Below are positions 24,918 through 62,745 of a stretch of DNA of 64,000 nt, piece by piece. The DNA comes from Oculina patagonica (Eukaryota): NCBI RefSeq assembly GCF_052425735.1, contig NC_135770.1, positions 28,024,001 to 28,088,000 on the forward strand, given 5' to 3'. The notes beneath the pieces are model-generated. The model searched no databases and had not been told where the DNA came from. It saw nothing but the letters and a program-made list of their open reading frames with translations. The first letter of the stretch is position 1. The number at the start of each line of letters is the position of its first letter. The position numbers and the translations under genes are program-made.

Positions 24918-27900
24918 ATGGTAAGTGAATTTTACTTAACTCGTTCAACAGTTACTTGGTTATTAACTCCGCGTGCGGTTGGTTGTCACTTTCTAACGAA
25001 AATTTCATGCCGATGTTTCTGTCGATTTCACCGCTATATGTTGACAAAGCCGATGCGTAAAACCTTAAGGCTAACAGATTTATATAACAGTGTTAAACTT
25101 TCGTGGTAATCCTTGTATTTAGGGAGGCAGTGGATTAATTTCGACTTATTACAGAGATTCAAATTCGAAACAGACGATTTTCGATCCACGGTCTTCATCA
25201 CCACAGATAATCCACCGCCCTGAAATTAATTTTCGCTTTGGTTGTATACCTCACATACATTTCACTCTTTTGTAAATTAGAGAATTGTCTTTGGTACCCG
25301 TAAAATGCCTGGCAAATCGACTGCTATAAGTAGAAATTACTGATCAGGAAAATGTTTACCATTTAATAGCTGTACGGGCAAACAGCAAATTACTCTATGC
25401 ATGTTCAGTTCTCGATGTAGGAATGTAAACAATGCAATGATTTGGCGTGATTTTCTCGATTCTACAAGCTAGCGCCGTTCTTGGCTTTTGATCGCTGCAC
25501 TTCAAAACTCTTAACATTGAGCTAATGGTTTGGAGTAAAAGAAACAGTTATGAATGAAAATGTATGTATATTTCTTGGTAAATTCTGCCGTTGGCTAACA
25601 GATGTGTGAATGCCTAGTCAGACGGAGCGAAAACTCACTACTTTGTATCCATGTTCAAACTGATCAGTCTCTGCAGATCTCAAAGCAAAAGAGTTTCAAG
25701 AAATAAATCCCTGTTTTCAGTATCCATGTGGACTGAGATTAAAGAACAACAGAGAAGTTCGTTGTTTGTTACGATTTGTCTTTTGATCTGTTTATCTAAA
25801 AGTTCAATCGTTAAGGGACCGGATATTTATGTAGAGGGGGGGGGGAAAAAAAAGGGGGGGGGGGGCTAATTTCGTTCTTGTCGATTCTCAAAAATCACAA
25901 GAGTATAAACAGACGAAATATTGATGCAACACGTACAGCCTTATTTGTTCTCATTTCTTTGATTAACAAAAAAAGCAATGGAAAACTTAATTTCCTGTTG
26001 CCATATTTCAGTCCATAAATGGATATACCAGAATTGAAAGATACATACGAGTTTCACTGACACAAAAACTGAAATTTGATTAAGAAATTTGGGAATGTCT
26101 GTCGCGTGTCATGAAATAAGTCACGCAAAAATGTCGGTCAGTTTCGTTGTCAAAATACCACTCAAGTACTTATTACTGTACATTTAAACTTAATTTAACC
26201 GTCACTAATTTACAGGCGACGCCGTCCTAGCGTGTGTTTTGGGGTTTTTTTCTGTATATTTGTGCAATCCGAAAACACTTGAGCTTGCGGGTTATAATTG
26301 GATTTAACTTAAATGACATTGAAGTGGAGATACTTTTTTTACGCGTCAAAGTCCTCTTCAATTAACCTTTCTGTGCACCAGTTGTGCCAAAGTTTAGAAC
26401 TGAGTTTCATACATGATGCGTTACGCTGATAAGGCACTCACTTTATGTTGCGTGATGCTTACTTTGTATTTCTTAAAGGGAGGGGCTTATGTACGTTGCG
26501 TGACACTGACTGTGTATTTCTTTTTATTCCCCTTAGTCGGCGTCACTATCACCAGAGCAGCTGAAGGGTGAGAGCCGGTTTATGATCTGATATATTCGAA
26601 GGCTACTTCGTTATTAAACTGTTTAATAGCAGATGAAATGACTTGTCACTGTCAACAGAAATTAACTAACTTTCGTAGGTTTTTAACACTTGTTTCGGTC
26701 ATTATCACTATCATTTTGATAAGTACGGTAACGGCTCGGCTACAAACATCACAGGTGTTGCGATAAGTTCCAAATAATTATTCCAAATAATCGTAACTCG
26801 CCATAAAAACGAATAAAATCATTATTGACCCTAGCTTGGGTCGTCATGCAACCTCTGCGTGACCTCTCAAATAACGGCTGCGATGAAAACTACCACTCTT
26901 GCCAGAAGTCGATAACGGAATGAAAACCAATTCAAGACACTCGGGGGTTATTTTCGTATAACCCACTAAATTTCTGTCGTTTTATCATTCTAGAATTCAA
27001 AGATGCCTTCAAAATCTTTGATGTGGATAACAGCGAGACCATCACGACAGATGAATTGCTTCTCGTCATGAAGAATCTCGGAATGATGGCCACGAAGGAC
27101 GAGGTGAAGGAAATGCTGTCCGAGGTCGACGAGGATGGTACGTTACCGGAAATCGTAGAAAGAATTAGGGTTTGGGGTAACCTGGGGTCGGCTCCTTTAC
27201 CCTTTGCGTGACACATGGATTCCCACTCCCTTTTTTTCCCTTTTCTCTCTTTACTTCTTTCTCCTCTTTTTTTTCTCATCCAACTGGAAAAAGCGGGCAG
27301 GTTAGGGGAGGACTATTGCAGTTTTAAACTGAAGAAAAAAACCGGCACAGTTTGTCACCAGTTGCTGCTTTACACGCATTCGTCACGCAACACTCGAAAA
27401 CAAGTTTTTTTGCGTGACAAACTAAAAAAGTGGTTGCTGATGGCGCTTGTAGAGGGTTTAGCACTGAACTGCATGTTTTTATAAAGAATCTAAGAACTAT
27501 CGGTTCTCTCCTCTATTTTTGGGCATTTTTCGTCTATATCGGCTTTCTTTTCTCTATTTTTGGCCGGGCACTGTCAAAAACGTGTGAAGTAAAATAGTGC
27601 ACCTTCAGTTTGTGGGAAGATGTCGAACAACTGAAATTTGTAAAAGAAACAAAGTAGGGGGTGGATGAAAAGGTGTAGGTGACGGGATGCCATAGATACT
27701 CCCAGACTCTTTTAATTGTAAATAATTTTAACTTTATTAGTATTTTTTTTTTGTGTCCCCTTTTTTTTGTTTTCTTTTTTTTTTCCATGAAATTCCTTCA
27801 GTTTAAATCGCTAATTTGTGTTGCGCGCTTTCTTACAGGAAGCGGAGAAATCGACTTTGAGGAGTTTGCAGAGCTTATGGTCAAACAGATGAAACAAGGA

Positions 27901-28813
27901 AGTGAACAGGAAGTGAGAGAAGCGTTCAAAGCATACGACACCGACAACAAAGGATACTTTACGAAAGACGAGCTGCTGAAGCTACTCACGGCAGTACAAC
28001 AACAGAGCAAAGACATCAAGATCTCCAAAGACGAAATCGAGGATGTGGTGAAGTTTCTGGAGCGCAATGGTCGAATCGACTTTGACAGTAAGTGTGTCTG
28101 GAGAGATTAAAGTGTTTTTGAGTCAAATAAGTCAATGCGTCAAATGTGAAAACACAGTTATAAATTTGAAAATAGTGCTGCCCTTACTAACAAGTAAAAG
28201 CTAACCACAGGCAAACCGGGGCACCTCGTTTCTGGAAAGAAACTTTACTTTTGTAACATGTAAATTTTGCCAAAACTCTACTTACAATGTGCGAGGGGCG
28301 ATTGTCTTTATTTGGTTTAGGCGGTGAAAATTAAGAGTTTTATATTATTATTATTATTAACTGGGACTCTATTTAAAATCATTTAATATTTTTTAAAGGT
28401 GTATAAATGGGTGCTACAGAAATCGGGATAAGTTCTGGCCTGATGGGCCACTAGGCTCGACGCAGACTTTACCTGTGTAAAGAAATGAGTAGTTTATGCA
28501 CACAATTACCTTCAAAAGAAGTTGTTAAGAAAGGGAAACACCAGAGTGGAAATATTCAACCAAAGACGAACAACAGTGATGAACATTATTGTAGAAGATT
28601 GAAATTAATGAAGTTGACTGACGAATTTTAAAAATTTTATAAAAAGTTTCTTTTTCCAAGCCCTCCACCCGCGTTGCTCTTTAGTCGAGAAAGGGCGTTA
28701 GCCGTTATTTTTCAAATTTTCCAAGTCATGCATGTTCCATTAGTTCAGGATGAGTTTAAAGGAAAGCAATATTTTATTATTTTCCAGAGTTTGTTAAAGA
28801 GCTGATGAAGTAA
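24918..28813 (+). CDS. Calmodulin-like EF-hand protein 1 (divergent, 150 aa)
   Basis: Exons 24918-24920 (ATG only), 26537-26567, 26994-27137, 27839-28087 and 28788-28813. The 3/31/144-nt exon pattern is that of calmodulin. Protein: MSASLSPEQLKEFKDAFKIFDVDNSETITTDE...DEDGSGEIDFEEF...DTDNKGYFTKDE...FLERNGRIDFDKFVKELMK. Confidence 0.9.
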
Positions 28814-36611: not shown

Positions 36612-39600
36612 ATGGTAAGTACTTTAAGTTTTATGTGCAAAATTGTGTTTCATATGATTATGCGCACCTAGCTCGAGAGTAAATGGGCAAACTACTTATA
36701 TCAGAACGTAGGTACATACGTGACATGACAAATCACGTATGGAAACAACAATTTACACCACTAAGCGTACCGTAGTTGACGTACATTTATATTATATGAG
36801 GGTGGGTTTAGATTAGGTCTGAGAACAATTCCGAGGGTTATAAGCGAACTCTTCCTGAGTAACAAAGTCTTTATTCAAAATAATGTCCGGTAACCAAAAC
36901 AGCTTGTAATGGCGTATGAGTTCTGTTTCATTCTTAAACACCTTTGCCAGCGGCAATGTAACGAGGGACAACGCATTAGCGGTCAACATACAAGATAAAG
37001 GTGAATTGCTTAGTGGAAAAGACCTAACCAAAGAGAATAAACGCTGCCTTATAAACACACTGTACACAATACTTGAACAGTTATGGCAAAATGTCTAATC
37101 AAACGAAGGAACGTAACACTTGTTTTAGTCTGCCCTGTGTGAGATTCTTATCATGGCCATTGCTTTAAAACATTTTGTATTGAAGCAATTTTTCAGCGGC
37201 GAAATGTCGAACTGAGTGAGCTTTCCGCTCATTCCATAGATCTACATACCGAATTAGTGATTTCTTTCTTGTCTTCAATTCATTATGTATATTTTTGTAG
37301 GTTTTTTTGAACAAAAATATGCGGAATTACGTCAGCAACGTCAGCTTAGTTGACCTCTGAACGCGAGAATGTATTAACATAAGTCAGCGGTACACTTCTC
37401 TAATGTTTGGTACCGCTCGTCTCCCTCGAATCGTTTCCGGCCTGATCTTGAGTTCCTTAAGTGTAACATCTGCAGTGTTTGCCAATAAAATAACTTGGTT
37501 GTTACGTTTGGCATTGCCGCGGTAAAAAGTTCGAAGCGTCGCACAGCATGTTAATCCCTGACGCATGCAACAGTAAAACAACACATCGTCTTGAAGTTGA
37601 TAGAAAAAATGTTTTGTTTATGATCAATACCGCACTCTATACAGAACTGTTTAGTCTGTCCTTTCAAAAAGAGACAAAAAACGTGTTTTGTTATGATCTT
37701 TTGCAGGAATTGACGTTAACTGAAGGACAAATAGCAGGTAAGGGAATACAATCCAAGGGCAACAGGAAATTGTCGAAAATTGTTTTTATCAGATCCAATA
37801 TAAGAGCTATTGACGTGTATTCTTTTGACATGGTCGCCAGAGTCGAATTATACCTTCTAGATCCTTCGAATGGGATCTCGCTTATCTTATCAATTTTGAA
37901 ATGAACTTAGAGGTATGATCGTTATTTCCCTTGTCAATCGAGTCTTTATCGATAGATGTTTATGACGTCATGTTAAATAACAATCGATAAAGCGACAAGT
38001 CTCGCAAGTAACTTGAAGTACAAACTGCAACGTGTGCCAGGACCTTAAGTCCTTTAAGTAAGTGGGAACAGCGACATACATATAAAACGTGTCCACTTTC
38101 TCGATGTTCAACGGAGTGTATCGAATTTATGAGTTCGAGTTAGAAGTTTCGAGTTCGAGTTATGGGGTACATTTTCCCAGTTGGTCACGCATAGTGTCTC
38201 CCTTATCACCAATGAAAGCTAACCGCAAGCAAATAGGAGTGGAACTAACCGCAAGCAAATAGGAGTGGAACTACTAACCGCAAGCAAACCAGAGTGGAGC
38301 TAACCGCAAGCAAATCGAACTCGATATTTTAACTCGAACTCGAAATTCTAACTCGAACTCGAACTCAACTCGAAATTCTAACTCGAACTCGAACTCATAA
38401 AATGGACAGACCCGATGTTCAACCCGGCGTGCTGAAACGGTGCATTTTGAACAATCCCAACGTCGTCTCATCTTGAGAGCGAGGCGCAGTGACGATAATG
38501 GTGAGCGTGTTTCGGGATTCTGGAGGGTTGGGAGTCCCGGGTTTGAGACCTGGCGGTGATCGTTGTGTTGAGTGCTCACGGTGCCTCCCTCACTCAGGAA
38601 TATAAATGGTGGTCGGTACATTCATTAATTAAGGCAATTCTTATTGATTGTAACACATTTGGTTTTGAGAATTTGGTAGTTTGTCAAGACCACGCAATAT
38701 TCTTGTTTGTTTGACAAGTATATTGGCATTGAACTAACTTTCCTTAAAGGGACACTGTCACCAGCTTCACTTCAAAAACTCAAGAGCTTAAAGACATATG
38801 GAAACCACAATATGATCCAGTTGTGTTAAAAATTACTATGCCAGTGTACTGAAGCTATAAACAAGTGACATCATGTGATGCCATCAGGAACTTAGATCCA
38901 ACTTGAAAAAGTCAGAATTTTTCAAGTTCTGTTCTGTGGACTGAAAAAACATCTAAAAATTATTAGGGCTCCCTTCTTCCTCAACAACAATTTACTTTAT
39001 ATCTTCATCTTGATGTACTAGGCGAATCTCATGTTCAGAAGACTACTTCGCCAATTTTTATATATTACTTTTTACCGAAAAGTAGTAAAATCCCCATGAC
39101 AGTGTTCCTTTTATTCAATGTAAATACTAAGTTAATACTTTGTTCTATAGATTTCAAGGAAGCGTTCTCGCTCCTTGATAAAGACGGTGATGGCACGATT
39201 ACCACAAAGGAGCTTGGGATACTGATGAGGTCTCTGGGTGAAAACCCGACCGAGCAGGAGCTGGAAGAGATTATCTTAGAAATCGACATGGACGGTAAAC
39301 CATTACCATGTTTTAAATACACGTCAAGAGCATTTTATTTCTACTAGAGACACATTTTTGATGATCTGTGATCTTGTGCTAAAATTCAGATGGACCTCAG
39401 AGAATATTCTTAATCGCATGCTGTCTTAGCCTCCCACGCAGTCGTTCTTAGGGGCGATCGTGTTAGCCCCTAAGAACGACTGCGTGGGAGGCTAATGCTG
39501 TCTCAGCTCGAAATATTCTTTTTACTAAGTGCTTAATGACAATACGTGATTGTAATTCTGAGAATTTGGTAGTTCAACATGACAATGCTATGCCCCTATT

Positions 39601-41053
39601 TGATAACTTACTTATTCTCCTCTCTTGCCTTTATTCCGAAGGTTCAGTGATAAACATTTAATTTCTCCTTACATGCAGTTTCAATGCATAGTCATCTAGG
39701 CAGGTGAAGATCAAATAGGAGCACTGTGTTGTTGAATGACCAAATTCTCAGAGCGGAATAAAGGTGTAAGCTGTGCTTTCCGACACTTGACGTAATTCGT
39801 AGTAGCTTTTGTACAACCATCGTCAGGCGTTTAGAATTATAAACAAGGCACGAAAATATCTCTCTTGGCAGAACGTAAGACCAAACAGCCCCTTGCACAA
39901 ATGACAAAGTTCGCAGTTATCCACTTCCAAATGCTAAAAACGTCTTTTTTGTTTTGCCAAGGTAATGGTATCATCGACTTCAGGGAATTTCTTCACTTGA
40001 TGGAGACGCGAATGAAAGGAACCGACACGGAGGCAGAGATACGAGAGATGTTCAAAGTGTTTGACATGGATGGGAACGGCTTCATCAGCGCTGAAGAATT
40101 CAAGTGGACCATGATGAACCTCGGCGAGCAGCTGACGGAGGAGGAAGTCGAGGAGATTATCAAAGCGGCTGATTTGAATGGCGACGGACAAATTGATCTT
40201 GAAGGTGATTTACCGTTTTGTGCGTTTGAAACCTCATGTATCCCCGATGAGTTCCTCCGTCTCCCAGTAATTTGTTTCTTCTGAAACAAACTCATCCTCG
40301 ATGAGTTCCTCAGCGGTCTCTCTCGGGCGCCCCATGGATACCCCCGGTAATCATCAGTTGCTTCTTGCGAACCAACCTCATCCCCAATGACTTCCTCGAC
40401 GGTCTCCCACGGGTCCCTTATGGATACCCCTGAGAATTTGCTTCTTCTGAACATTTCGTCTTCCCATAAAAAAAAAAAACATCTAAATCAGTGCTCATTA
40501 AATCACGATTATTATTATTAATTTTTACACAGTTTAGTAGACATACGTCATGAAAAAAGAAAACTTTCTTTTATTATAAATGGATAAGACTGACGTCTTC
40601 TTTGTGTATTTCACTAATTACCTAATCGCGGACCAGTGGGACCCCCTCTGAGTAGGTAACAATGTGCTCCATGCTTGACATTTATTTTAACAATGGGCAT
40701 TTTTATTAGTTTTATACCTTTTGAAACAGTGTTGCAAAGTTGCGACTAAGGGATTAGAGAAAAACTATTTCACTTGGAGCAGTCACCTAAAGGGCTTCTC
40801 GTCCCCTTTCCGCAAAATCCCGGTGGGGGTTTCTTCCCCGGGAATATATTGGGTTGAGGGACGAGAAAACGACCGGCAATTCAGGTCAGGATCTTTTGCT
40901 CTATGTACAATACTACCCAAAGTGTCATGTTACTATATAAAATCGGTCGTATGAAGAAACACTGATTCTAGAAAAAACAACTATCTGGGACTTCCACTCT
41001 TTAATTTGCTCTATGCTTTTCTTTCAGAGTTCGTTAAAATGATGTCGTCATAA
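36612..41053 (+). CDS. Calmodulin-like protein 3 (closest to canonical calmodulin, 148 aa, four intact EF-hands)
   Basis: Exons 36612-36614, 37707-37737, 39151-39294, 39962-40204 and 41028-41053. Protein: [34 protein letters not shown]...[13 protein letters not shown]...[12 protein letters not shown]...[19 protein letters not shown]. Confidence 0.92.
38113..38413. mobile_element. MULE-like MITE with 10-bp TSD and an internal 26-bp minisatellite
   Basis: gatgttcaac on both sides, (GAGTTC)n/(GAACTC)n subterminal arrays, about four copies of ctaaccgcaagcaaataggagtggaa. Confidence 0.7.
39427..39494. mobile_element. 68-bp hairpin micro-transposon (TAGCC..GGCTA) with 9-bp TSD
   Basis: tagcctcccacgcagtcgttcttagggg..cccctaagaacgactgcgtgggaggcta flanked by atgctgtct. 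Confidence 0.85.
40230..40455. repeat. Degenerate tandem repeat (unit up to about 85 bp, about 2.5-3 copies) in intron 4 of calmodulin-like 3
   Basis: Recurring atccccgatgagttcctc..ggtctc..atggatacccc..ttgcttctt. Confidence 0.65.
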
Positions 41054-41905: not shown

Positions 41906-43439
41906 CAGAAAATAAATACCGTGTTAATTTTCTAATTACCAGCTTGTATTAACCAGTCTCCCAGAACAAAAATATTGTGAGATATTTGCACTGGTTTTGA
42001 GCGTTTTTTGAACCTTACTAAATAAATAATAAACGACTGTTCAAGTTAAAAATATTAAGCCTGCTGTCTTTGTTGTTGTGTGCAGTTGTTTCTTGTTAGA
42101 TAGAGATGTGAAATTTCGGTTGACAATCCGGGTTGATATCGACTATATTCAATCGACATGTTTCATTTGGATGTACTTTAGAATTGGCTTAAACTGACTA
42201 CATTTTAGGCCAATGCACCTATCCATTTCCAATATGTATTGGTCAACTATTTTCGTGAAACATTCTCAAACTCATTAATAATTGGTCAAGTTAAAATAAA
42301 TGAAATAAGGACCGTGGGGTGGTTTGAATATGCGATCTTCATTAGTATCGATTTTTACAATTTTAATTTTTCCGTTTACCCCTGAACTTTAGTTTCGGTT
42401 GAGAAAATATATCAAACACTCAAGAGAGTGTTTCATCACATTTCCAATTCACCTCGAATTTCTTCAAAAATACTACAATGCGCGTCGTAATTTCAGCTCT
42501 CTTCTCGGTGTTTGGAAATGCGATGAAACACACTCTCTCTTGTTTGATATGCTAAATCAAAACTTACAAACACTTTTAATTGAATTATAATGTAGAAAGC
42601 TCTTGAGGCAGAAGAACAGTGTCAAAAAGTGTTTTAACAGTTTCCACCTTGAGCTAGACAGCATTCAAGTCACCAACCATGATTCGTGTAATTTAATTTG
42701 TTTCCTTGGAATCTGTATCCATCAATTCTGTCCCTTCTACTTCCAAGCTGCAACCTGGTGCCTCGATTCTGAAATAAAAGCTTTCATTAGTTTCTATTGT
42801 AAATTTGTCTTGCCTTTTTAATGCATAGCCTGGAATGTGAAGCTAAACAAATATGTTCATATTTATATATATATATATATATATATAAGAGAGACACAGA
42901 TTTATTTGTAAGTTGGTAAGGGTGAATGAATGAGTAAAACACTATCGGGTCAACAAGAAGGGTGGTTTTCTTTTGAAGTGGTTGCCTGCTAAGGAGGGTT
43001 GGCGGGAGGGGTTGGGTAAAATAAATATACGCTTTTTTGCTCAAAATGGGGTGGGCGGGGTGGAGGTGGTACCGTTCGTCCTTTAATGGGGCGAGTTGAT
43101 TTTTCTGTCCTTTCAGCCTTATATTTTCCTGCGATCATGAAGGAGGGAGTGGCACCCCCAGGCCACTCCCCTTGATTCGCCACCGGCCAATGTCAAAACA
43201 ACATAGAAAGTTAAATCTCGTTGAAACGCAAGGTGGTCGTGTTGCAAGCGAGATGGTATGGTCACTTGAAGAGCATGAGTTGAATTTCAAGACAGACATG
43301 GCTTACATCATTAACATTGGGATTCAGGCCGAGGTCGACTAGCTCAGCATCATGCTGGAGTCTCTGCAGTTTTAACAGCAATGAACTGCACCTGGTTTAA
43401 CTAAGACATTCTACGCAGACAAAACAGGCTACGTACAAG

Positions 43440-46400
43440 TTAGGTTGACCTATACTCACCTATTGTCCGTCTGACGTCAGCTCTGCGTTGTCTTGGCAAC
43501 TGTGCCCGAATCAGTCTTACGTTTGTGAAACGGAGGCCAACAGCTATGAGGGGCTCGTTAGGTGAACTTCCTATGCAGGTTGGTCGCTCTCCGATGTCCA
43601 TGACAGCTAGTACTTCACCAGAGGTAACACTGAACACTCGCACGTTACAGTCATATCTAAAGCAGACAACAGATTTACCATCGTTGAGAAACTTGCAGTC
43701 GGCGATGTCATAACAGTTCTCGAGGAAGACGTGGTTTCTTCGTCCTGTTCCCGCCTTAAGGACGTGCAATCCGTAGCCATTATTCAGAGTATTCCATGTA
43801 ACGAGCACATCCCCGTTAGGAGGAAACACACAATGCGGATGTCTCCAATAACAACCGCCCTGATAGATGGCGTCGTCTTTTTTCCAGGTGAACATCTCTG
43901 CCTCACCTTTGTAGAGGACCATTTGGCGTTTCTCACCGTCTTGTTCACTGCAGAAGACCACGTCTCTGTGAATGCTACATGCAACAGATTTCATTTCTGC
44001 TCTACCATTCAAAACCCTTTCAAGCACACCTTTCCACGAAGAAACATCCAGCATGGAAAGTTTCAATGGGTGTTGTCCTTCGGAAGAAGATGCTTTTAGA
44101 ACGCAACCAACAAAGTCCTTCGATACAGGAAACAGTCTCTCGATTTCACTTGACATGGTCAAAGACTGGACGCATTCAGACAAGTCGCTGTTCCATAATT
44201 CCAATGTGTTGCTGTTGGTCTGCAGAAGAACACCTCTCCCAACCGGTGAACTCAGAAGCCCATTTCTTACACGCCTTGTAGTGTGTTGAAGGCTCTTTTC
44301 TCCTTTGACGTCCCTTGACACTGTCAATGTCCCGAGCGGATAGTGTTACCGAACAACGTTTATCCAAAGGATCCTTAGGGCTGCAATTAGTCATGGTTGC
44401 ATACAAGTGCACGGTCGTGGTGTCCCACGAAAATGCAGCCTCTACTGTCCGTTGCATCATCTCACTTGCATTGTAGGGACCAGCAACATTCAACATTGTT
44501 AAGTAATTATCAGTTGGACCCCCAACCACTGCCACGTCTCCCGGCAACAAGGAACAAAACCCTACCATCAAGTCTGCTGAAACAAAGTGGCAAACTTTGC
44601 AAACGACTTGCAATCTGTCAAAGGAATCCACTGATTCCCAAGGCCACAAATAGAGTTTACAGGTGCAAGAACAATGTGATTGATGGTTTGCAACGAGGAT
44701 AGAATCAAACATAAATGTCGAGAGTTTGTACACATCACGGCCATCAGAGTGAGTGGACACAATGCTACCACAAACAAGACCTCCATTGGCTGTAAAGTGT
44801 AATAGTCCACAAGCCATGCCTTCGCCAGAAATATCTTCAGCCACTTGTCGCCAAACGGAACTTCGAGTGTTGTACACCAAGAGAGATCCTTTTGAATCTG
44901 AAATTGCTACAAGATTCCCATCTTGGGAGATAGCAAAGGAAACTATGTTATCTTCCAAATTGAAGCGTTTGATCTCTTCGCCATTGTCTGCATTCCACAT
45001 GACCACCTCTTTGCTGTTGTCTGGGCAGTCTGTTAGCATCTTGTTCTTGTCTCCGGAGAAAGCACAAACAGTGAAATGACACTGACTTGTTGGAAAGAGT
45101 GACGTCGCCTGTCCACCTAAGGTGTACACATTGGCCAGGTTTCCCGGCAGGATGAATTGCCCATCTGGATGAAAAACAACAGAACGATAAATCGAAAGTG
45201 TCCTGCCTCCATTCACACTGTTCGTGCCAATTCCTCGAAATGCAGTTCCGAGAGGAACATTGTCGTACGACTTTCTTGATTCCAAGGAACTGTCCTTCCA
45301 TTCCAGCTCACCAGTCTGGAGCGACCATAAATGAATCGTTCCATCTCGGCATTCGCACACCATGTGCTCCCCATCTGGTGAAACATCAAAGCAAACCACT
45401 TTGTCTGAACAGTAGAATCGCGCTTCAACAGGAGTCTGATGCTCGTTCTTGTCTACCAGCTCCAGATATGGCATCTCATTATGTTTAGTCGAAAGGAAAT
45501 TTGACACTTCACGAGATAGCTCTGATCCTCCTTCGATCAGTAAGTTTTGGAAAATCATCTGAGGAAGATCCCGAAGAAGACCTCCGTGCTTCTTGAACTG
45601 CAACAACAAACTCTGAAGTGTCCTTTTTGTTTCTTCGCTGAATGTACTTGAATTCCGATGTTCTTGCGCAGGAAGCAGATCTCTCAGCACATCGGCGTTT
45701 TTATCACACAGCTTAGCATAAACGAGTTCTAGATCCGTTACATACCCTTTCACCAGTTCTTCCAGCTGGTTGGGATCCTCCAATGCTTCTAGCATATGCT
45801 GAAAGCCGTGTTGCAAGGCATACCTTTGAGGGTTACTGAATGGTGCATCATTTACACAACATGTCTTCAGCTTGTCAAGCTCCGCTGTACAAAGTTCGGA
45901 AAGAATCTTGTGGCCCCCTTTTTCGTGGTTTCCAGAAGGTGAATTGCCAGTCAACCAATCTCTGACTGATTTGTGAAAGATGTGAACATGGCCTTCTCGA
46001 ATAGGAAAAAGAGATGAAATACAGCTGATAACATTGTCAACTTTTCCCTTAACACTTAGTCGATCATTTGCTGAGATGTTGGTGTAGCACTGTAGTATTT
46101 CGGACACAAAATCTTTAGGCAAGGGGTCCCTTGCCGCTGTTAAGGCGCACCGGAAATGGAACAGGAAATGGCCACAGTCATTCGCCAACTCTTTCTGGAG
46201 GTTATCCTCCATCCTCCTGAAACAGGTTGTGTAAAATTCTGAAATTCCTTGGGGGAAGCTCGAGCGAAGTTGCTCTGGTGTTGGTGGTGATGTGCTTTTT
46301 TCAATTAAATCTATTAGGAAGTAAGCATACAGCATCAGACCTTCCGACAGTTGCACCAGTTCTCTCATAATAGCAGGTCTTTCTTCTGGGGGTGTGCTAT

Positions 46401-47618
46401 CACGAATTCGCTCTTCAAAGAAGAGTTCTACATCTTCACGATTTCTGTCATCATTTTGTTTTAATTCCAAGGGGTTGAAACGTTTCAACCGGTCCAAGAT
46501 GTTTCTCTCCGGTCGTGTGGTGACTAGAAATCGGATCCAAGGTGGAAGCCTGCAGATGTGGTTGGTAATCACGTCAAGCAATTCATTCTGTCCTTGGAGC
46601 TCAGTTTCATCTAAGCCGTCTATCACCATTAGGATGTTTCTCCCAGGGTCAGCTACAGAGCTGAGTGGCTCCTTGAAAAGCAAAGCAAACAGATCCACCA
46701 CCCCCAGGTTGTTAAGTTCTTCGTCTATATCACGCCGCGAAAGCTGTTTGACGAGAGCTTTCTTGTACTCAGGCAAACTACTGCTCAGATGGAATGACAA
46801 TGACTGGAGCATCAGTTTGGGGTTTCGATAGCGGTAGCTGTTGTACTGGCAAAAATGGCTCCCCGACGATCTCTCTGCCTCTTGCATTTTCTTACAGATT
46901 ACTGCTGCTACTACTGACTTGCCTATACCTGCCCCTCCGGTGATAACCTTTGCTTGGTGTTGAGACCTTCTGTCGTCTAACCAATCCTTGACGCCGTTAA
47001 AGATCCATTCGCGAGTACCGTTCTGGAATCGATCTCTACATGCGTGATATTCTATTTCAGCTTTAAAGTCAAACCTTGTAAGTTTGTTGAGGGGATGAAT
47101 CTTCAAGGCGTCTATCTCATTTCTATCCTCCCCAAAGGCAACAAGGGCATCAGCGATTTCCTGCCAATGTAATTCAAAGTCTCGGGTGGATACCTCAGTG
47201 GTTGTCGGATGACTGATCAAATTTCGATAATGTTTGATACGAGCGATATTTGCCTCTGGTGATGTATCGCTTGAGGGTGGTTTGTTGTGCCATCCCGTTT
47301 GGGGTGGAGACAAGCCACAAATTTTAGTCAGAAGGATGCAAAGCAGCGAAATGTCAAATGTGCTAGAGTCTGGACGTCCTCCACCAGGTGGGAATAGTTG
47401 TTCCCACTGAGGATCTGTTCAGCACTTTGTTTCTGCAAGAGAGGTTCTAGAGTTTGTCGTTGGACACTGAGAACAGCAGCTAGGCTTGAAGGAGGGTGAA
47501 AACCATCGAATACGCGCCTTAAAGCTGATGTCCCCCCATCAAAGAGAAGCTGGTGTAATTTCGCACCATTCGATTTTTCTTCAGAACTGGCAAAAGGTGA
47601 TGTCGGAGGGCTTGCCAT
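43440..47618 (-). pseudogene. Intronless HEPN(DZIP3-like)-NACHT-WD40 STAND/NLR-like gene, frameshifted at about 47410-47432 and about 44320
   Basis: N-terminal LLFDGGTSALRRVFD..HPP..QWEQLFP..STFDISLL..CGLSPP..GW..RIKHYRNLISH, then GTREWIF, Walker A GGAGIGKS, HFC, Walker B ILMVIDGLDE, FLVTTRP, FHKSVRDWL and WD40 repeats (VVCFDVSPDGEHMVCECRDGTIHLWS). Three ORFs (47618-47328, 47313-44176, 44327-43440) join by frameshifts. It may be an intact gene if these are assembly errors. Confidence 0.8.
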
Positions 47619-47910
47619 TTTGAACGTTTACTGATGCATTGCTTTAAGGGTGTGTGGTCAAAATAGCTTTTTGCACTGAAAACAAAGGAGCAAATAGTAG
47701 ACTTCGTTAGCATGCCTCGTTATTTTCCCCGCATGTGGCATTTCGTTTGAAAATGCTTCAACTGTCCAAATAAAGAATCTACTACATTTGAAAATTTTGG
47801 AAAATTTTTAGTGATTTCTTTATAGTGTAAAAATTGTAAAACAATTTTGTGTCTTTGACAAATAGACCACATTTTTGCATGGTTTACACACTAATATAGA
47901 CCATAGTAAT

Positions 47911-57212: not shown

Positions 57213-60200
57213 TTATGTGTTTTCACTGCTACAAAGGGTGGTCCACTTGTTCCTATGTTTATTATAATTACCATTTCTGATAGCAATCTCTCTTTCTGAT
57301 TGAATTTTACTTTTATTGCGCTTTTCAGTGAAATGCGAACTCTGAAATTCAATCCTCAACCAACGGTTTACGCTTTTCGCTGCCGTCAATCATCTTTGCG
57401 GACCTCTCGGGAAACAGACGCTCACTTCACCTGGGTCAAAAGGTCACGTCTCTCGATTGTGATTGGTAGATTTCGATCCATTTTGTTTGTTTCTGTTTTT
57501 CATGGTTCGCTAGCTGTCGCCATAATTATGATTGACGGCAGCGAAAAACGCAATCATTACAGTCAACTCTCGTTATAGCGGACACGCTCGGGACGTCGTT
57601 TTGTGTCCGTTATATAGCGAGAGTCCGTAATAGCGGGAGTCATTTCCAGTCAAACCTCTTTCGCCGGGGATTTGGATTTTGTCCGTAATAGTAAGTGTCC
57701 GCAATAGCGGGGTGTCCGCAAGGCGAGAGTTGACTGTAGTTGGATTTTGAATTTCAGAGTTCGCATTTCACTGAAAACCGCAATAAGCAAACAAAGAAAG
57801 ACCTCAAACATTGGATTTTCAGACTTGATTTTTGAAAGGTAAATGTGATATTTGCCTATTAAAAAGAAGTGGTTTAGCGCATAAAAACTAGAAGATCCTG
57901 GTTTATAGCCATAAAGAATTTCAATAGGTTTTGGATTTATGTTTTCAAAGCGTTTTACGTTCCACCATTCGATTGCCATTATCCAAAATTGTTTCACGAT
58001 AGGACACTCGCAAAACATGTGTTCTAGTGTTTCATTTACATAATTACACAACTCACATACTGGTGAGGCTTTTATCTTCATTTTATATAGTCTTTGGTTT
58101 GTAGGGAGAATGTTATGGATTAATTTGTACTGAAAGCTTCTTAGTTTATTTTCTATTGTGATTTTGAAAGGTAGTTCATAGATGGCTTCCAAGTCCGTAG
58201 CATTTTGATTCTGTAGGCGGCGTTCTACAGTGGGTGGGCGAAAGGACTTTCCGACGAGCAGAGAGCGAGCTTTTTTGGCAGAAACATTATCTGCTGTTAA
58301 GACGTTTTGCGTTCTTTGATTACCTGAAGGAGTATCGAGGATTGCGGTTTTCCAGGCTTTTGGGATTGCGGCGATCACGCCTGCGTAGTCCAAAAAAGTT
58401 GTACGGACACCGAACTTGGCCTTAAAATGTTCGAAAGATAGAAAGTTTCCCTGCTCGGTTAGAAGGTCACGAATCTTTACGATTCCATTTTTATGCCACG
58501 ATTTGAAATAAAATGATTTACCGCAAATCCTTATGAAACGATTGTTCCATAAGATCTCTTCTTTAAAATCTGTGGAATTAACTGGGTCATTTGAGTGAAT
58601 TTCTTGCCAATTTGACAGAATCTCTTTATAAAAAATTGGAATGTTTTTTAACTCTAGGTAATTTAGATTGAAATTGCACTGAAACAGGAAAGCACCTCCA
58701 TATTTTAACAAAAACGAATTAAGAAAGGCGCACCAGTTGTTTTCAGGCTCATCACAGAAACGTTTTACCCAAGCAATTTTTAGGGACTTGTTGACGTCGT
58801 TGAAATTGACCATATTGAGCCCGCCTTTGTTCACCGGGCCGATTAACGTACTTCTTTTAATTTTATCAGGCTTAAAATTCCAAATAAAAGCAAAAATTGT
58901 TTCATTTACTCTTTTGATGAAATCTGATTGAACGTGTAACACCGAAGAACTGTAAACAAGCTTAGAAAGGGCTAACGTTTTAATAATGGTTACTTTCCCT
59001 AAAATCGTTAAATGCCTACCAGTCCAGAGATTTAAAACTTTTTGAAGCTTAGAGAGCTTTGTTTCAAAGTTCATGTGTTGGCGAACTAGAGTATCGTAAG
59101 CAAAGACGACTCCAAGAGTTGTAACGTATTGTTCTGGCCATGATATTCCGAACGGACTGTACTTACCAAGTCTGCCTTTCCAAGCACCAAGCCACATTCC
59201 CTCGGTCTTGTGTCTATTTATTTTGAGTCCGGAGCACGTACCGAATTGCTCAAGAAGGGTGAATAAATTGGAAGCAGAACTGTCATCCGGCAGAAAGGAA
59301 GTAGTGTCGTCGGCATATAGGCTAAGTTTAACTGTTTTATTTCCGTTATGAAGACCTCTGATTGATTCGTCAAAACGAATTTTATGTGCAAGTGGTTCTA
59401 CGGCAAGTATAAAGAGTAGTCCAGACAGTGGACAGCCTTGTCTGACTCCTCTTTGAAGAGTAAAGAATTCTGATGCGTAGCCATTGTTAATGACGCAGCT
59501 GTTAATGTTGTTATAAAAAGTGCGAATCCAATTTCGAAAACTTGGTCCAAAGTTCATAGCCTCAAGTGTCGTGAAAAGGTATTCCCATTCTAGAGAGTCG
59601 AACGCTTTCTCGACATCTAAGAAGAGAATCATTCCTTGTTTGTTTGGATTGCTATACTGTTCTATAATATCTGAAATTAATCGTATATTTTCACCAATAT
59701 ATCTACCTTTAATATAGCCCGTCTGATCTCTTTCTATTAAGTGAGGGAGCACTTTTTCTAAGCGTCTTGCTATACATTTGGTCGCTATTTTATAATCGGT
59801 GTTTAAAAGTGAGATAGGGCGCCAATTTTTGAGCTGAAGAAGCTCTTTGCTTTTTTTGGGAATTAGCGAAATAATTCCTCTTTTTTGTGAAATAGATAAT
59901 TCGCCAAAAACTGCCGCTTCATTAAAGCAGAGAACCAGATGACTAGAGATTTCGTTCCAGAATCGGAGGTAAAACTCAGCCGTTAAACCATCTGTTCCGG
60001 GGGTTTTGTTCTTTTGAAAGGTTTTTAGTGCATCTAAGCATTCTTCTTCGGTTATTAGTCCTTCGCACACGGTCTGCATGTCTTCATTTAACTTTGGAAG
60101 TGAATTAGATTGGAGAAAAGTCGAAGATCGCGCAGGAGTATCCTTCGGGAATTGAGAGGTGTAGAGATCACTATAAAATTTTTTCATTTCATTGAGAATA

Positions 60201-61419
60201 ACTTGCGGGTCTTGTGTGGTGAAGCCTTCGGACGTTTTCAATTTTGTGATGTGTCGTTTATTGTAGCTTCTTTTTTCGAGATTGAGGAAATATTTATTAC
60301 ATTTCTCTCCAGCTTCATACCACCTTGCCCTGCTTCTAACAATACAACCTTTTGTTTTCTTTTCTGCGATTTGATCGAGCTCAATCTTAAGGGTTTTTAC
60401 TTCTTTTTGAAGATCTTGGTCCTCTGGATTTTGGTCAATAAGGCTGTTAATATTGTTCAAATTGTCGAGTAGTTTAAATTCTGTAGATTTTTTTTCTTTA
60501 CCTTTCTTTTTGAGAAACGGATTGCAAATATGCGAATTTCCATTTTTATCATTTCCCAAAGGAGCCGTTTGTCAAGTGTGGTTTTATGCTTCTGAGCAGC
60601 ATTTCTTATGATGAAAGACATTTTGTTGACGAATTCTTCGTCCTCGAGAAGAGAATTGTTGAACTTCCAGAAACCTGGACCTTTTTTTTCCTGAGAATCT
60701 TCAGGGTTGATCAAGAGGGTGATCGGAGAGTGGTCGGAATCATAATAAGATTTGATGTCACTGCTTTCGACTTGTTTAATTAATTGTTTTGAAATTAGCC
60801 AGTAGTCTAGCCTGCATTTTATCTTTCCGGAACTGTTGCTCCAGGTGAAACGGGCATCAGTTGGGTGAAGATTTCTCCAAACATCCACAAGGTTGAAACT
60901 ATTGCGGAGATTTTCTATAGATTTCAAAACGTTGTCTTTGTGGTGAATATCTTTTCCGCCGAACTTGTCAAGAGCGGTTAGCGGGCAATTGAAATCTCCG
61001 CCGACGATGATTTTTTCATTTGTGAATCGACGGATAACGTCCATGAGCTTAGTAAAGAAGTTGACTTGCTGCGTTTGGTCGTTTGGTGCATATATGTTGA
61101 CGAGACAGAGCTCTTTTTGATTAATGTTTGCGCTTATAATCAGAGATGTACCATTTTTTCCCAAATGAACGTCTGAAATATTAGCGTTTAGAGAAGGTCG
61201 AAATAAAGTCATGACGCCTCTACTATGTTTCGAACCGTGAGAAAAATATATATCTCCTCCCCACTCCGCTCGCCAAAAGTCCTCTATGGCCGAGTCACTG
61301 TAGGATTCTTGAAGGAGAACGATATCATATTTTCCTTGATGAAGCCATCTGAACAATTTTCGCCTTTTGATTGATTTGTTGAGGCCTCGAACGTTTAAGG
61401 AGATAATGTTTAAAGACAT
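57213..61419 (-). CDS. LINE ORF2 (APE endonuclease, reverse transcriptase, C-terminal zinc motif), disrupted
   Basis: SLNVRGL, LLQES, NIYAP, GGDFN, RLDY, SDHSP, GPGFWKFNNSLL; KTPGTDGL, NWRPISLLNTDYKI, GVRQGCPLS, YADD; CELC..ETLEHMFCEC. There is a frameshift in an A8 run at 60488-60495. The true C-terminus (LLKSKIQSEREIAIRNGNYNKHRNKWTTLCSSENT*) is restored by removing the MITE at 57316-57783. Confidence 0.9.
57316..57783. mobile_element. TA-TSD MITE inserted in the 3' end of LINE ORF2
   Basis: TIR ttgcgcttttcagtgaaatgcgaactctgaaattcaa against its reverse complement (1 mismatch). TA at 57314-57315 and 57784-57785. Confidence 0.9.
57560..57736. mobile_element. 177-bp Tc1/pogo-type MITE nested in the previous MITE
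   Basis: TA-cagtcaactctcg ... cgagagttgactg-TA. A second copy lies at 4336-4492. Confidence 0.9.
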
Positions 61420-61827
61420 TTCTTTGGAATACGAGATTTTTTTCTGAAGTGTGTGTTCGCACCTTGTGCAGTGGGATAGGTGAAAACTGGTAAAAGCTTG
61501 CGTCTATCAAGCCAGCCTATTTGAAACGAAATAACGATGTACATATGCCAAAAGTGTAAACACATACCAAACACGAACCGAATAACACTAATGAAGTATA
61601 GAAGGGAAAAAAGAAGCTAATTATGCTAACTTTGTGAATTAAGGTGTGACGCAAAAAAATTCCCTCCTACAATTCCCCAGCGATTCGGAACTTTTAAGAA
61701 AACAAAGTCGGAATTCTTTGATATTTGACAAAAGTTTACGCTGTTATTTGCATATGTTTAAGCTACGGCTAAATGTTTGTTTTGTTTTGTTCTTTCGTTC
61801 ATATATCTGCTGCAACTAAATAATTAT

Positions 61828-62745
61828 TTAACTAATGTTGAGGTCTTCAGCTTTAAGGATACGAATGGGCCGCTCATCCACGGATCTTTTAATAAATATT
61901 TTTCCATCGATGGTCCACGCACTATGCCATTCTTTGTCGTCTTTTGCTTTCCTTGCTTTTCCAAAAAGTTGGCGTCGCGACTTGGTCAAGTTTTCGTTTA
62001 TAAAGACTTGTGTGGTACCTGGAAATACTTGATTTACGTCGATGCGTCTGAGCTGCTTACGCGCAGAGTAGAGCTCCTTCTTTGCACGATATGATCTAAA
62101 TCGTACTATGATAGGTCGAGGCTTGTGTGCAAATCGCGGGTTTTGAGCCATCCTGTGGCAAATATCAATATCACCTTTTGCAATTTTGACGTTTAACAGA
62201 TTTCCGAGTTTAATGATGAGCTCAGAGATATTTTCGTCGTCTTCTTCGGGAAAATCGTGAAATTCTAAATTGTACTTTCGAGTATATTGTTCGAGGTCGT
62301 CTAGATTAGAGTTTGTTGATTTTAAATCATTGCGAAGTTTACTCACTTGGTCAGCCTCTTTGTTCAGAGCATTTTGTAATCTCGTCACCTCGGTCTTGAG
62401 GTTTACATTTTCTTTTTCCACTTTCTCCAGCTTTTCGACGTGGAACTCCAAAGATGTTCTCAGCTCTGCGTACTGCTCTTTGAGGTCTTTGTTTTCCTTC
62501 AAGAGTTGGTCCGTATTCTCTTGTATTGTCTTTAGTATTTTCCAGATTTCCTTGTTGGAGACCGCCTCGCCGCTTTCGTCAGCCGAAGCGCTGCCAGGCG
62601 ATGCGCTCATTTTTGAAGTTTTGGAGGGAGGCGAGCCAGTATTTCGTTGTTTTCGTTTCTTTCTATTTGCACCCATTAAAAAGGGCGCATTTTGAAGTCC
62701 CAAATACCAAAGATAACGCTTTGCTGGGGAAAAAGAAGGCCACAC
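61828..62745 (-). CDS. LINE ORF1 (coiled coil plus L1-type RRM/CTD RNA-binding protein); true start probably a downstream ATG (about 62676 or 62610)
   Basis: Long heptad coiled coil followed by LEQYTRKYNLEF..PE, IDICHR, PRPIIVRF, VFINENLT and WTIDGKIFIK. Confidence 0.88.
   Translation of the reverse strand: MWPSFSPAKRYLWYLGLQNAPFLMGANRKKRKQRNTGSPPSKTSKMSASPGSASADESGEAVSNKEIWKILKTIQENTDQLLKENKDLKEQYAELRTSLEFHVEKLEKVEKENVNLKTEVTRLQNALNKEADQVSKLRNDLKSTNSNLDDLEQYTRKYNLEFHDFPEEDDENISELIIKLGNLLNVKIAKGDIDICHRMAQNPRFAHKPRPIIVRFRSYRAKKELYSARKQLRRIDVNQVFPGTTQVFINENLTKSRRQLFGKARKAKDDKEWHSAWTIDGKIFIKRSVDERPIRILKAEDLNIS

Follow-up and report, generated by a model that had tools for sequence, protein, structure and literature searches.

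The DNA analysed here is a 64,000-nt stretch of the Oculina patagonica genome (contig NC_135770.1, positions 28,024,001 to 28,088,000; hereafter the window), and the gene in question occupies its minus strand at 43460–47618. We regard this locus as probably the O. patagonica copy of an orthogroup conserved among 'robust' stony corals, encoding a HEPN-NACHT-WD40 STAND ATPase of about 1395 amino acids (aa) that may work through a HEPN ribonuclease (RNase) mechanism; the copy is broken by three frameshifts, and we lean towards reading it as a recent null allele. The family is already catalogued, with a DZIP3-like HEPN head predicted to be an RNase, a NACHT switch and two WD40 propellers, and the locus is an ordinary member of it. 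The analysis adds the positions of the three breaks, which were absent elsewhere, the definition of the orthogroup and how well it is conserved, a corrected exon structure, and models of the HEPN fold and dimer.

A frameshifted member of a coral orthogroup

Pfam searches of the minus strand revealed the domain order DZIP3-like HEPN, NPHP3_N/NACHT and WD40 across the locus. A first-pass annotation made from the letters alone had proposed a HEPN-NACHT-WD40 protein, and this architecture was borne out, since profiles for a DZIP3-like HEPN, NPHP3_N/NACHT and WD40 were matched both in the window and in the intact orthologue P0002. The gene is not one continuous frame: three minus-strand open frames overlap at their ends instead (47328–47618, 96 aa with an ATG start; 44176–47313, 1045 aa; 43440–44327, 295 aa), with three +1 insertions relative to the intact orthologous loci L013 and L014. 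The middle frame matched HEPN_DZIP3 (PF18738) at 75.3 bits (cut-off 27) over profile positions 60–137 only, because two of the shifts put the first part of the domain in other frames; P0002 matched the full domain (profile positions 1–137) at 153.8 bits. NPHP3_N (PF24883, 90.1 bits) and NACHT (PF05729, 34.3 bits) both exceeded their cut-offs in the middle frame. Many WD40/beta-propeller models matched there below threshold, the third frame added further propeller matches, and WD40 (PF00400) scored 32.4 bits in P0002.

Taken together with tblastn and the fold model described below, the Pfam matches place the HEPN domain, which is DZIP3/hRUL138-like and has two frameshifts inside it, at 47086–47618. 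It is followed by the NACHT-type STAND P-loop NTPase (46474–47019; Pfam and motifs), a helical and winged-helix region between NTPase and propellers (45472–46473), and a WD40 region (43460–45471) modelled as two beta-propellers with about 57 strands. The helical region was recognized by weak TANC1-like matches of lid and winged helix-turn-helix type (PF25520 and PF25521, both below threshold; the paralogue P0051 reaches the PF25521 cut-off). The ATG at 47616–47618 aligned with the start codons of L013 and L014. The HEPN and nucleotide-binding motifs read in the sequence were as the annotation had claimed: R-N-L-I-S-H, an Rx4-6H motif of HEPN type with Rx4H spacing, is encoded exactly at 47226 to 47209, and Walker A (GGAGIGKS, 46915–46938) and Walker B (LMVIDGLDE, 46606–46632) are both intact. 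Sensor-1 with its arginine (FLVTTRPE, 46507–46530) is intact as well. The annotated product P0001 (903 aa) translates only part of the middle frame, starting downstream of Walker A. Because it contains neither that motif nor the HEPN domain, it is not to be mistaken for the product of the gene.

A protein search returned full-length relatives of 1384–1427 aa with HEPN_DZIP3, NPHP3_N/NACHT and WD40, the nearest being P0002 (88% identical) and P0003 (78%). These intact orthologues of 1384 and 1386 aa are each a single open frame on their own contig, that of P0003 being a 727-kb genomic one. At the nucleotide level the window was 92.7% and 86.2% identical to the single-frame loci L013 and L014, respectively. 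Orthogroup members are named in Orbicella faveolata (LOC110043126), Pocillopora verrucosa and P. meandrina, all as 'uncharacterized'. Downstream of the gene, in convergent orientation, an EF-hand gene is found both in the window (39.1–40.3 kb) and beside P0003 (L014), and this common neighbour supports orthology.

Nucleotide alignment with L013 and L014 revealed insertions of a single base at three sites, near 47429, 47412 and 44316, all seen in the window alone. We also compared contigs of four public runs at the locus, namely X1 (two haplotype contigs), X10, X4 and X12, none of which is the assembled individual. The first insertion adds one base to GAAACAAAG relative to both orthologues (47427–47434), and the X1 and X4 contigs omit one base at 47434. 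At the second (47411–47415), CC stands for the C of the orthologues, and the X1 and X12 contigs omit one base at 47415; in this region both X1 contigs have 399 nt across 401 window positions. The third, AA for A, lies within the WD40 region (44312–44318), where one base is missing in both X1 haplotype contigs and in the X10, X4 and X12 contigs. Thus, the contigs of all four runs have one base fewer at every frameshift site that they cover. The first two insertions are 17 nt apart inside the HEPN domain and upstream of RNLISH, so that the ATG is, as assembled, out of frame with the motif, the NTPase and most of the WD40 region. Judged from these frames, the copy as assembled is unable to encode the full protein; translation as a single protein succeeds in P0002 and P0003 and fails in the assembled window. 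Besides these insertions, the window differs in length from L013/L014 by in-frame steps of 3 nt and, at the unspliced stop, by 2 nt.

Analysis of substitutions among the window, L013 and L014 (Nei-Gojobori method, NG86) showed pairwise ratios of non-synonymous to synonymous change (omega) of 0.29–0.37. The HEPN, NACHT-helical and WD40 parts gave similar values, those of WD40 (0.31–0.36) being no higher than the rest. Substitutions are under purifying selection, with omega at about 0.3. Codon changes on the window branch numbered 57 for the non-synonymous and 64 for the synonymous class (L013 branch, 38:33), and its omega, derived from the three pairwise distances, was about 0.26. Such a low value on the window branch indicates no long period of relaxed constraint, so the breaks are either very recent or errors; an old pseudogene with relaxed constraint was ruled out by the branch counts and omega.

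Between these two, we consider a very recent null allele the somewhat better account, and consensus errors of the assembly, in an animal with an intact, expressed gene like that of its relatives, a serious alternative with a probability not far below even. Several observations weigh against a null allele. All three breaks are +1 insertions and two of them double a base (C to CC, A to AA), the extra bases are absent from both X1 haplotype contigs and from contigs of three further runs, there are no premature stops beyond those caused by the shifts, and omega on the window branch is the lowest of the three branches; moreover, the run comparison took in no sample from the assembled individual. 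On the other hand, about 30 paralogues of 4–4.6 kb (1250–1640 aa) in the same genome are free of frameshifts, which means that the per-base indel error rate is low and the assembly is not generally indel-ridden. The frameshift contexts contain no long homopolymers, and the nearest paralogue is only about 45% identical, so polishing reads should map uniquely. Nonsense codons occur in several paralogues of this genome; the family does decay here, which favours real breaks. A literature search found no usable description of the O. patagonica assembly method. Either way, a possible natural null allele or a local assembly error is flagged in the O. patagonica reference, and if the frameshifts are real, the sequenced haplotype is a natural knock-out of the receptor.

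Two further observations concern the same region. Measured at synonymous sites, the terminal branch of the window has roughly double the length of the L013 branch (64 versus 33 codon changes; synonymous distance about 0.11 versus 0.055), a length expected neither from sequencing error nor from relaxed constraint. X1 is the diploid DNA sample closest to the window; its two haplotype contigs differ from each other at many sites, several per 100 nt in places (43300–47800), and by indels of 1–5 nt in the flanks of the locus, a heterozygosity gauged at this locus only. X1 also carries homozygous differences from the window that are common to runs of other species.

Predicted fold, conservation and proposed mechanism

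Residues 1–180 of P0002, modelled with AlphaFold2 (AF2) on an alignment of 97 sequences, gave eight helices at a predicted local distance difference test score (pLDDT) of 90. This model matched those of DZIP3 (residues 381–556) with template-modelling scores (TM) of 0.80 for mouse and 0.79 for human, at 30% identity and E 2e-9; a DZIP3-type HEPN fold, as supposed by the first-pass annotation, was therefore predicted for the intact orthologue. In the alignment of 97 homologues, R131 and N132 were invariant and H136 was present in at least 90% of rows; by pattern count, the RN...H motif occurred in 119 of 119 homologues. The survey of paralogues likewise upheld the expected conservation of the motif, with one variation in spacing: a large paralogue clade has RNELYGH (Rx5H), compared with Rx4H (RNxxxH) in the window orthogroup, and the Rx4-6H definition takes in both (PMC3710099, PMC9646362).

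Exhaustive structural comparison with VIA-align placed HEPN proteins among the best rows (Csm6, Z 7.2 and 6.1; AbiF, 6.5; AF_0298, 5.7; Cas13, 5.5), together with sacsin, Swt1 and 1wwp (Z 5.2) and with Roquin and MtlR/YggD. Prediction of two HEPN copies gave an interface score (ipSAE) of 0.45, compared with 0.13 for the best of three controls. Of 30 proteins whose structures were solved as pairs of one chain, 21 attained that mark, as against 0 of 23 solved as single chains; for eukaryotes the figure was 17/29 and for animals 7/16. At least 91% of contacts were common to the dimer runs, and the partner pLDDT was at least 86. The predicted interface is symmetric and involves helix 1, residues 85–88, and residues 137–140 directly after H136, which as a model fits the canonical HEPN dimer. 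The C-terminal 687 residues of P0002 (700–1386) were modelled by AF2 with about 57 strands (pLDDT 83; predicted TM, pTM, 0.82), and this region is modelled as two propellers. Foldseek matches of the model in the PDB were tandem WD40 propellers, the best by TM being Apaf-1 (3shf; query-normalized TM, TMq, 0.48).

By analogy with Apaf-1, RNase L/Ire1 and bacterial Avs proteins, RNase activity, ligand gating and an immune role may be proposed for the intact protein. Until a ligand binds, the propellers would keep the NTPase shut; exchange of nucleotide would then drive oligomerisation of the NACHT domains, and this would bring adjacent HEPN heads together as symmetric dimers, in which two Rx4H motifs jointly form an RNase site that needs no metal. 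Such sites would cut viral and/or cellular RNA, by the logic of RNase L or bacterial Avs. A mechanism by analogy with RNase L, Ire1 and others has been proposed for HEPN-NACHT fusions (PMC3710099).

We put forward only tentatively that the intact protein of the orthogroup (Oculina, Orbicella, Pocillopora) may be an adaptor-free NLR-type receptor, in which ligand capture by the propellers leads to NACHT oligomers and these to active HEPN RNases. Five points weigh against our overall reading of the protein. In the searchable literature, no animal HEPN-NACHT protein has an RNase assay, a ligand or a phenotype; a Foldseek search of the PDB with the HEPN model gave no match at E <= 0.001; and among PADLOC defence profiles, the orthologue gave only a marginal HEAT-ARM match (E 1e-3). 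VIA Z values of 5–7 are usual for helical bundles, so that the enrichment for HEPN proteins outweighs any single value; given the negative Foldseek result, support from solved structures is moderate. The dimer score, moreover, is the output of a structure predictor and could echo HEPN dimers already solved. Searches of the PDB by sequence and by profile, with the HEPN alignment and the NACHT region, also gave no match, so that by sequence this HEPN family has no solved structure.

The main rival, which we hold to be less likely than not, is that the HEPN domain is not a nuclease but an RNA-binding, nucleotide-binding or homotypic oligomerisation/adaptor module that signals via other proteins. 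DZIP3, the founding member, is known as an RNA-binding ubiquitin ligase rather than as an RNase. Several HEPN families, including sacsin, the C-terminal domain of Swt1 and Roquin, are inactive or binding modules, and these are present among the VIA matches. Noel et al. name the domain 'RNA-binding' (PMC10236652), and Anantharaman et al. describe the catalytic residues of the DZIP3-like family only as 'mostly conserved' (PMC3710099). Against this stands the conservation of the arginine, asparagine and histidine among the 97 homologues at about 45–88% overall identity, with spacing within Rx4-6H, which is what an active site predicts; in the pearl oyster, too, the motif is kept in 194/202 such domains (PMC9646362).

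A role as an allorecognition determinant of HET-E type with hypervariable WD40 repeats, also raised by the first-pass annotation, we find highly improbable. The combination of NACHT and WD40 is that of HET-E, allorecognition does occur in corals, and X1 is apparently highly heterozygous across the locus. However, one-to-one orthologues exist in different coral families, and within the orthogroup the WD40 region (59–80% identical) is no less conserved than HEPN (51–82%). Tandem Repeats Finder detected no internally similar repeats at the DNA level, whereas HET-E-type repeats are near-identical to each other. The diversification of WD40 that such a role implies was thus not seen, as WD40 matches HEPN in omega and identity, and conservation between coral families with omega near 0.3 in all three domains disfavours this option for the orthogroup.

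Exon structure and the family in the genome

The first-pass annotation had called the gene intronless. This holds for the large coding exon but not for the gene, which has an intron in its 5' untranslated region (UTR) and a 691-nt 3' intron. At the 5' side, the X12 contig (3659 nt) and one X10 contig stop matching the window at 47676 and continue unlike it. Here the UTR intron ends in a polypyrimidine tract and a CAG acceptor (ctcctttgttttcag/TGCAAAAAGC, the slash marking the junction; 47676–47700); the gene strand reads ctcctttgttttcag/TGC at 47676/47675, which makes a consensus acceptor lying 57 nt upstream of the start codon. The large exon thus starts at 47675, with 57 nt of 5' UTR (47619–47675). 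At the 3' side, the X10 (record 9) and X12 contigs leave the window at 43464, where ACAATAG/GTGAGT forms a consensus donor (43460/43459) one codon before the unspliced stop. The X10 contig ends in a 30-nt loose end (reverse complement CGAG/AATCGTGGCACC...), which matches the window from 42768 downward with 4 mismatches in 26, directly behind a second acceptor, tttatttcag. This position was found by a 12-mer search; a search with the 26-nt loose end at <=3 mismatches gave no match in the window, the fetched loci or the whole genome. The X10 junction defines a phase-1 intron at 42769–43459 (GTGAGT ... tttatttcag), followed by the last exon, in which reading of the frame places the last 11 codons (42737–42768) and, after them, the 3' UTR. 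The spliced protein would end in ...RRTI-ESRHQVAAWK-stop, and X10 extends about 1 kb past the 3' junction.

X10 and X12 cover 43464–47676 and leave the flanks uncovered, whereas the DNA runs X1 and X4 cover the flanks. Since their contigs are spliced at both ends, X10 and X12 appear to be RNA, and we infer from these junctions that at least two relatives transcribe and splice the orthologous gene with its frame intact. The gene model is corrected accordingly, with a 5' UTR intron and a 3' intron that carries the last 11 codons to another exon; the 1384–1386-aa orthologue 'proteins' are unspliced open-reading-frame (ORF) calls.

Analysis of the whole genome revealed at least 150 HEPN_DZIP3 matches above cut-off among 264 candidates, and about 30 intact HEPN-NACHT-WD40 paralogues, with clusters on contig 9 (C9; 12.4–13.5 Mb) and contig 7 (C7; 5.05–5.22 Mb). 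The window copy, on contig 13, is 42–47% identical to these paralogues and is the sole member of its subfamily in this genome, outside the tandem clusters. Its subfamily lacks the HEPN-NACHT linker of about 100–170 aa found in the clustered paralogues, with Walker A at residue 227 compared with 288–427. A short-linker, single-copy and slowly evolving orthogroup would be easier to study than the tandem clusters. We also considered a retrocopy, as the split HEPN and NACHT-WD40 matches of the paralogues had been taken as an intron; this idea was ruled out, since a single open frame holds the two pieces. P0051, which NCBI names as an O. patagonica protein, aligns collinearly and in full to contig 9 at 100% identity, and the paralogues simply have a longer linker.

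Four paralogues on C9 (13144397–13147732, 13163015–13164970, 13211010–13214210 and 13459343–13461919) each contain a single in-frame stop (TAG/TGA) and, by this reading of their frames, are likely pseudogenes. Contig C1490 duplicates part of the C9 cluster with identical scores and is probably an unplaced haplotig. Most HEPN_DZIP3 matches fall in short frames of 200–320 aa (contigs C8, C12, C2, C4 and C6), with dense clusters at, for example, C8 26.6–27.1 Mb, C8 29.5–30.5 Mb and C12 29.9–30.0 Mb. These represent HEPN exons or HEPN-only genes and do not belong to the C9 and C7 clusters of single-exon HEPN-NACHT-WD40 genes.

Elsewhere in the window, calmodulin-like EF-hand genes lie on the plus strand at 39096–40284, with at least two exons, and at 27679–28110. 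A retroelement resembling a long interspersed nuclear element occupies 57650–62745 on the minus strand in three parts: a 969-aa ORF with reverse transcriptase (PF00078, E 4e-40) and zf-RVT, an overlapping 320-aa ORF with an exo-endo-phosphatase endonuclease, and an upstream 305-aa coiled-coil ORF with a Baculo_FP_2nd-like domain. Its endonuclease and reverse transcriptase are in different frames, so this copy looks frameshifted.

Comparison with known systems

That the architecture itself is not new, as the first-pass annotation had noted, agrees with four studies. The DZIP3-like HEPN-NACHT fusion was described in 2013 as expanded in Nematostella and oyster (Anantharaman 2013, PMC3710099). HEPN is the commonest non-LRR partner of NACHT in anthozoans, with 17–83 genes per species (Emery 2021, PMC8260672), and is abundant at the N-termini of coral NACHT proteins (Noel 2023, PMC10236652). 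In the pearl oyster, HEPN-NACHT proteins have WD40 or TPR C-termini, and the count of domains with the Rx4-6H motif given above comes from that study (Takeuchi 2022, PMC9646362). Corals and bivalves count HEPN-NACHT proteins among their most abundant NLR-like genes, and the present locus adds little on activity, ligand or phenotype.

The closest likeness is to the DZIP3/hRUL138-like HEPN-NACHT proteins of anthozoans, bivalves and amphioxus, a group known from comparative genomics only, which share the Pfam order, the N-terminal HEPN with RN...H, WD40 as one of several C-terminal repeat types on record, and a large lineage-specific expansion. In contrast to the clustered HEPN-NACHT paralogues, the window orthogroup is single-copy in the genome and conserved across coral families, with a short linker and Rx4H, and this copy is frameshifted. 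Fungal HET-E/NWD2-type proteins also join an NPHP3_N-like NACHT to WD40 repeats but have a HET or prion-forming N-terminus where HEPN stands here; the WD repeats of the window orthogroup, unlike those of HET-E, are neither highly similar to one another nor evolving in concert, and they bear no mark of diversifying selection.

Apaf-1 resembles the orthogroup protein in having a STAND NTPase followed by two WD40 propellers, and it is the best TM match of the modelled propellers. In Apaf-1, ligand binding by the propellers releases autoinhibition. Its NTPase is nevertheless NB-ARC rather than NACHT/NPHP3_N, and it recruits a caspase through a CARD adaptor instead of carrying an enzymatic HEPN head. 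RNase L and Ire1 combine a repeat or sensor module with a HEPN RNase that is active only once ligand-driven dimerisation pairs two Rx4-6H motifs. They differ in belonging to the KEN-type HEPN family, in dimerising via a (pseudo)kinase domain rather than a STAND ATPase, and in their ligands, which are 2-5A or unfolded-protein stress.

In bacterial Avs/bNACHT systems, a nuclease effector at the N-terminus is joined through a STAND NTPase to a repeat sensor at the C-terminus, whose binding of a pathogen protein leads to oligomerisation, and HEPN-like effectors have been noted on related sensors (PMC13581612). Their sensors, however, are mostly TPR-like, the orthologue has no PADLOC match beyond the marginal one given above, and the likeness is one of superfamilies only. 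If the proposed mechanism is true, the orthogroup protein would be a eukaryotic equivalent of the Avs nucleases of bacteria and, with a STAND module as its driver, an analogue of RNase L.

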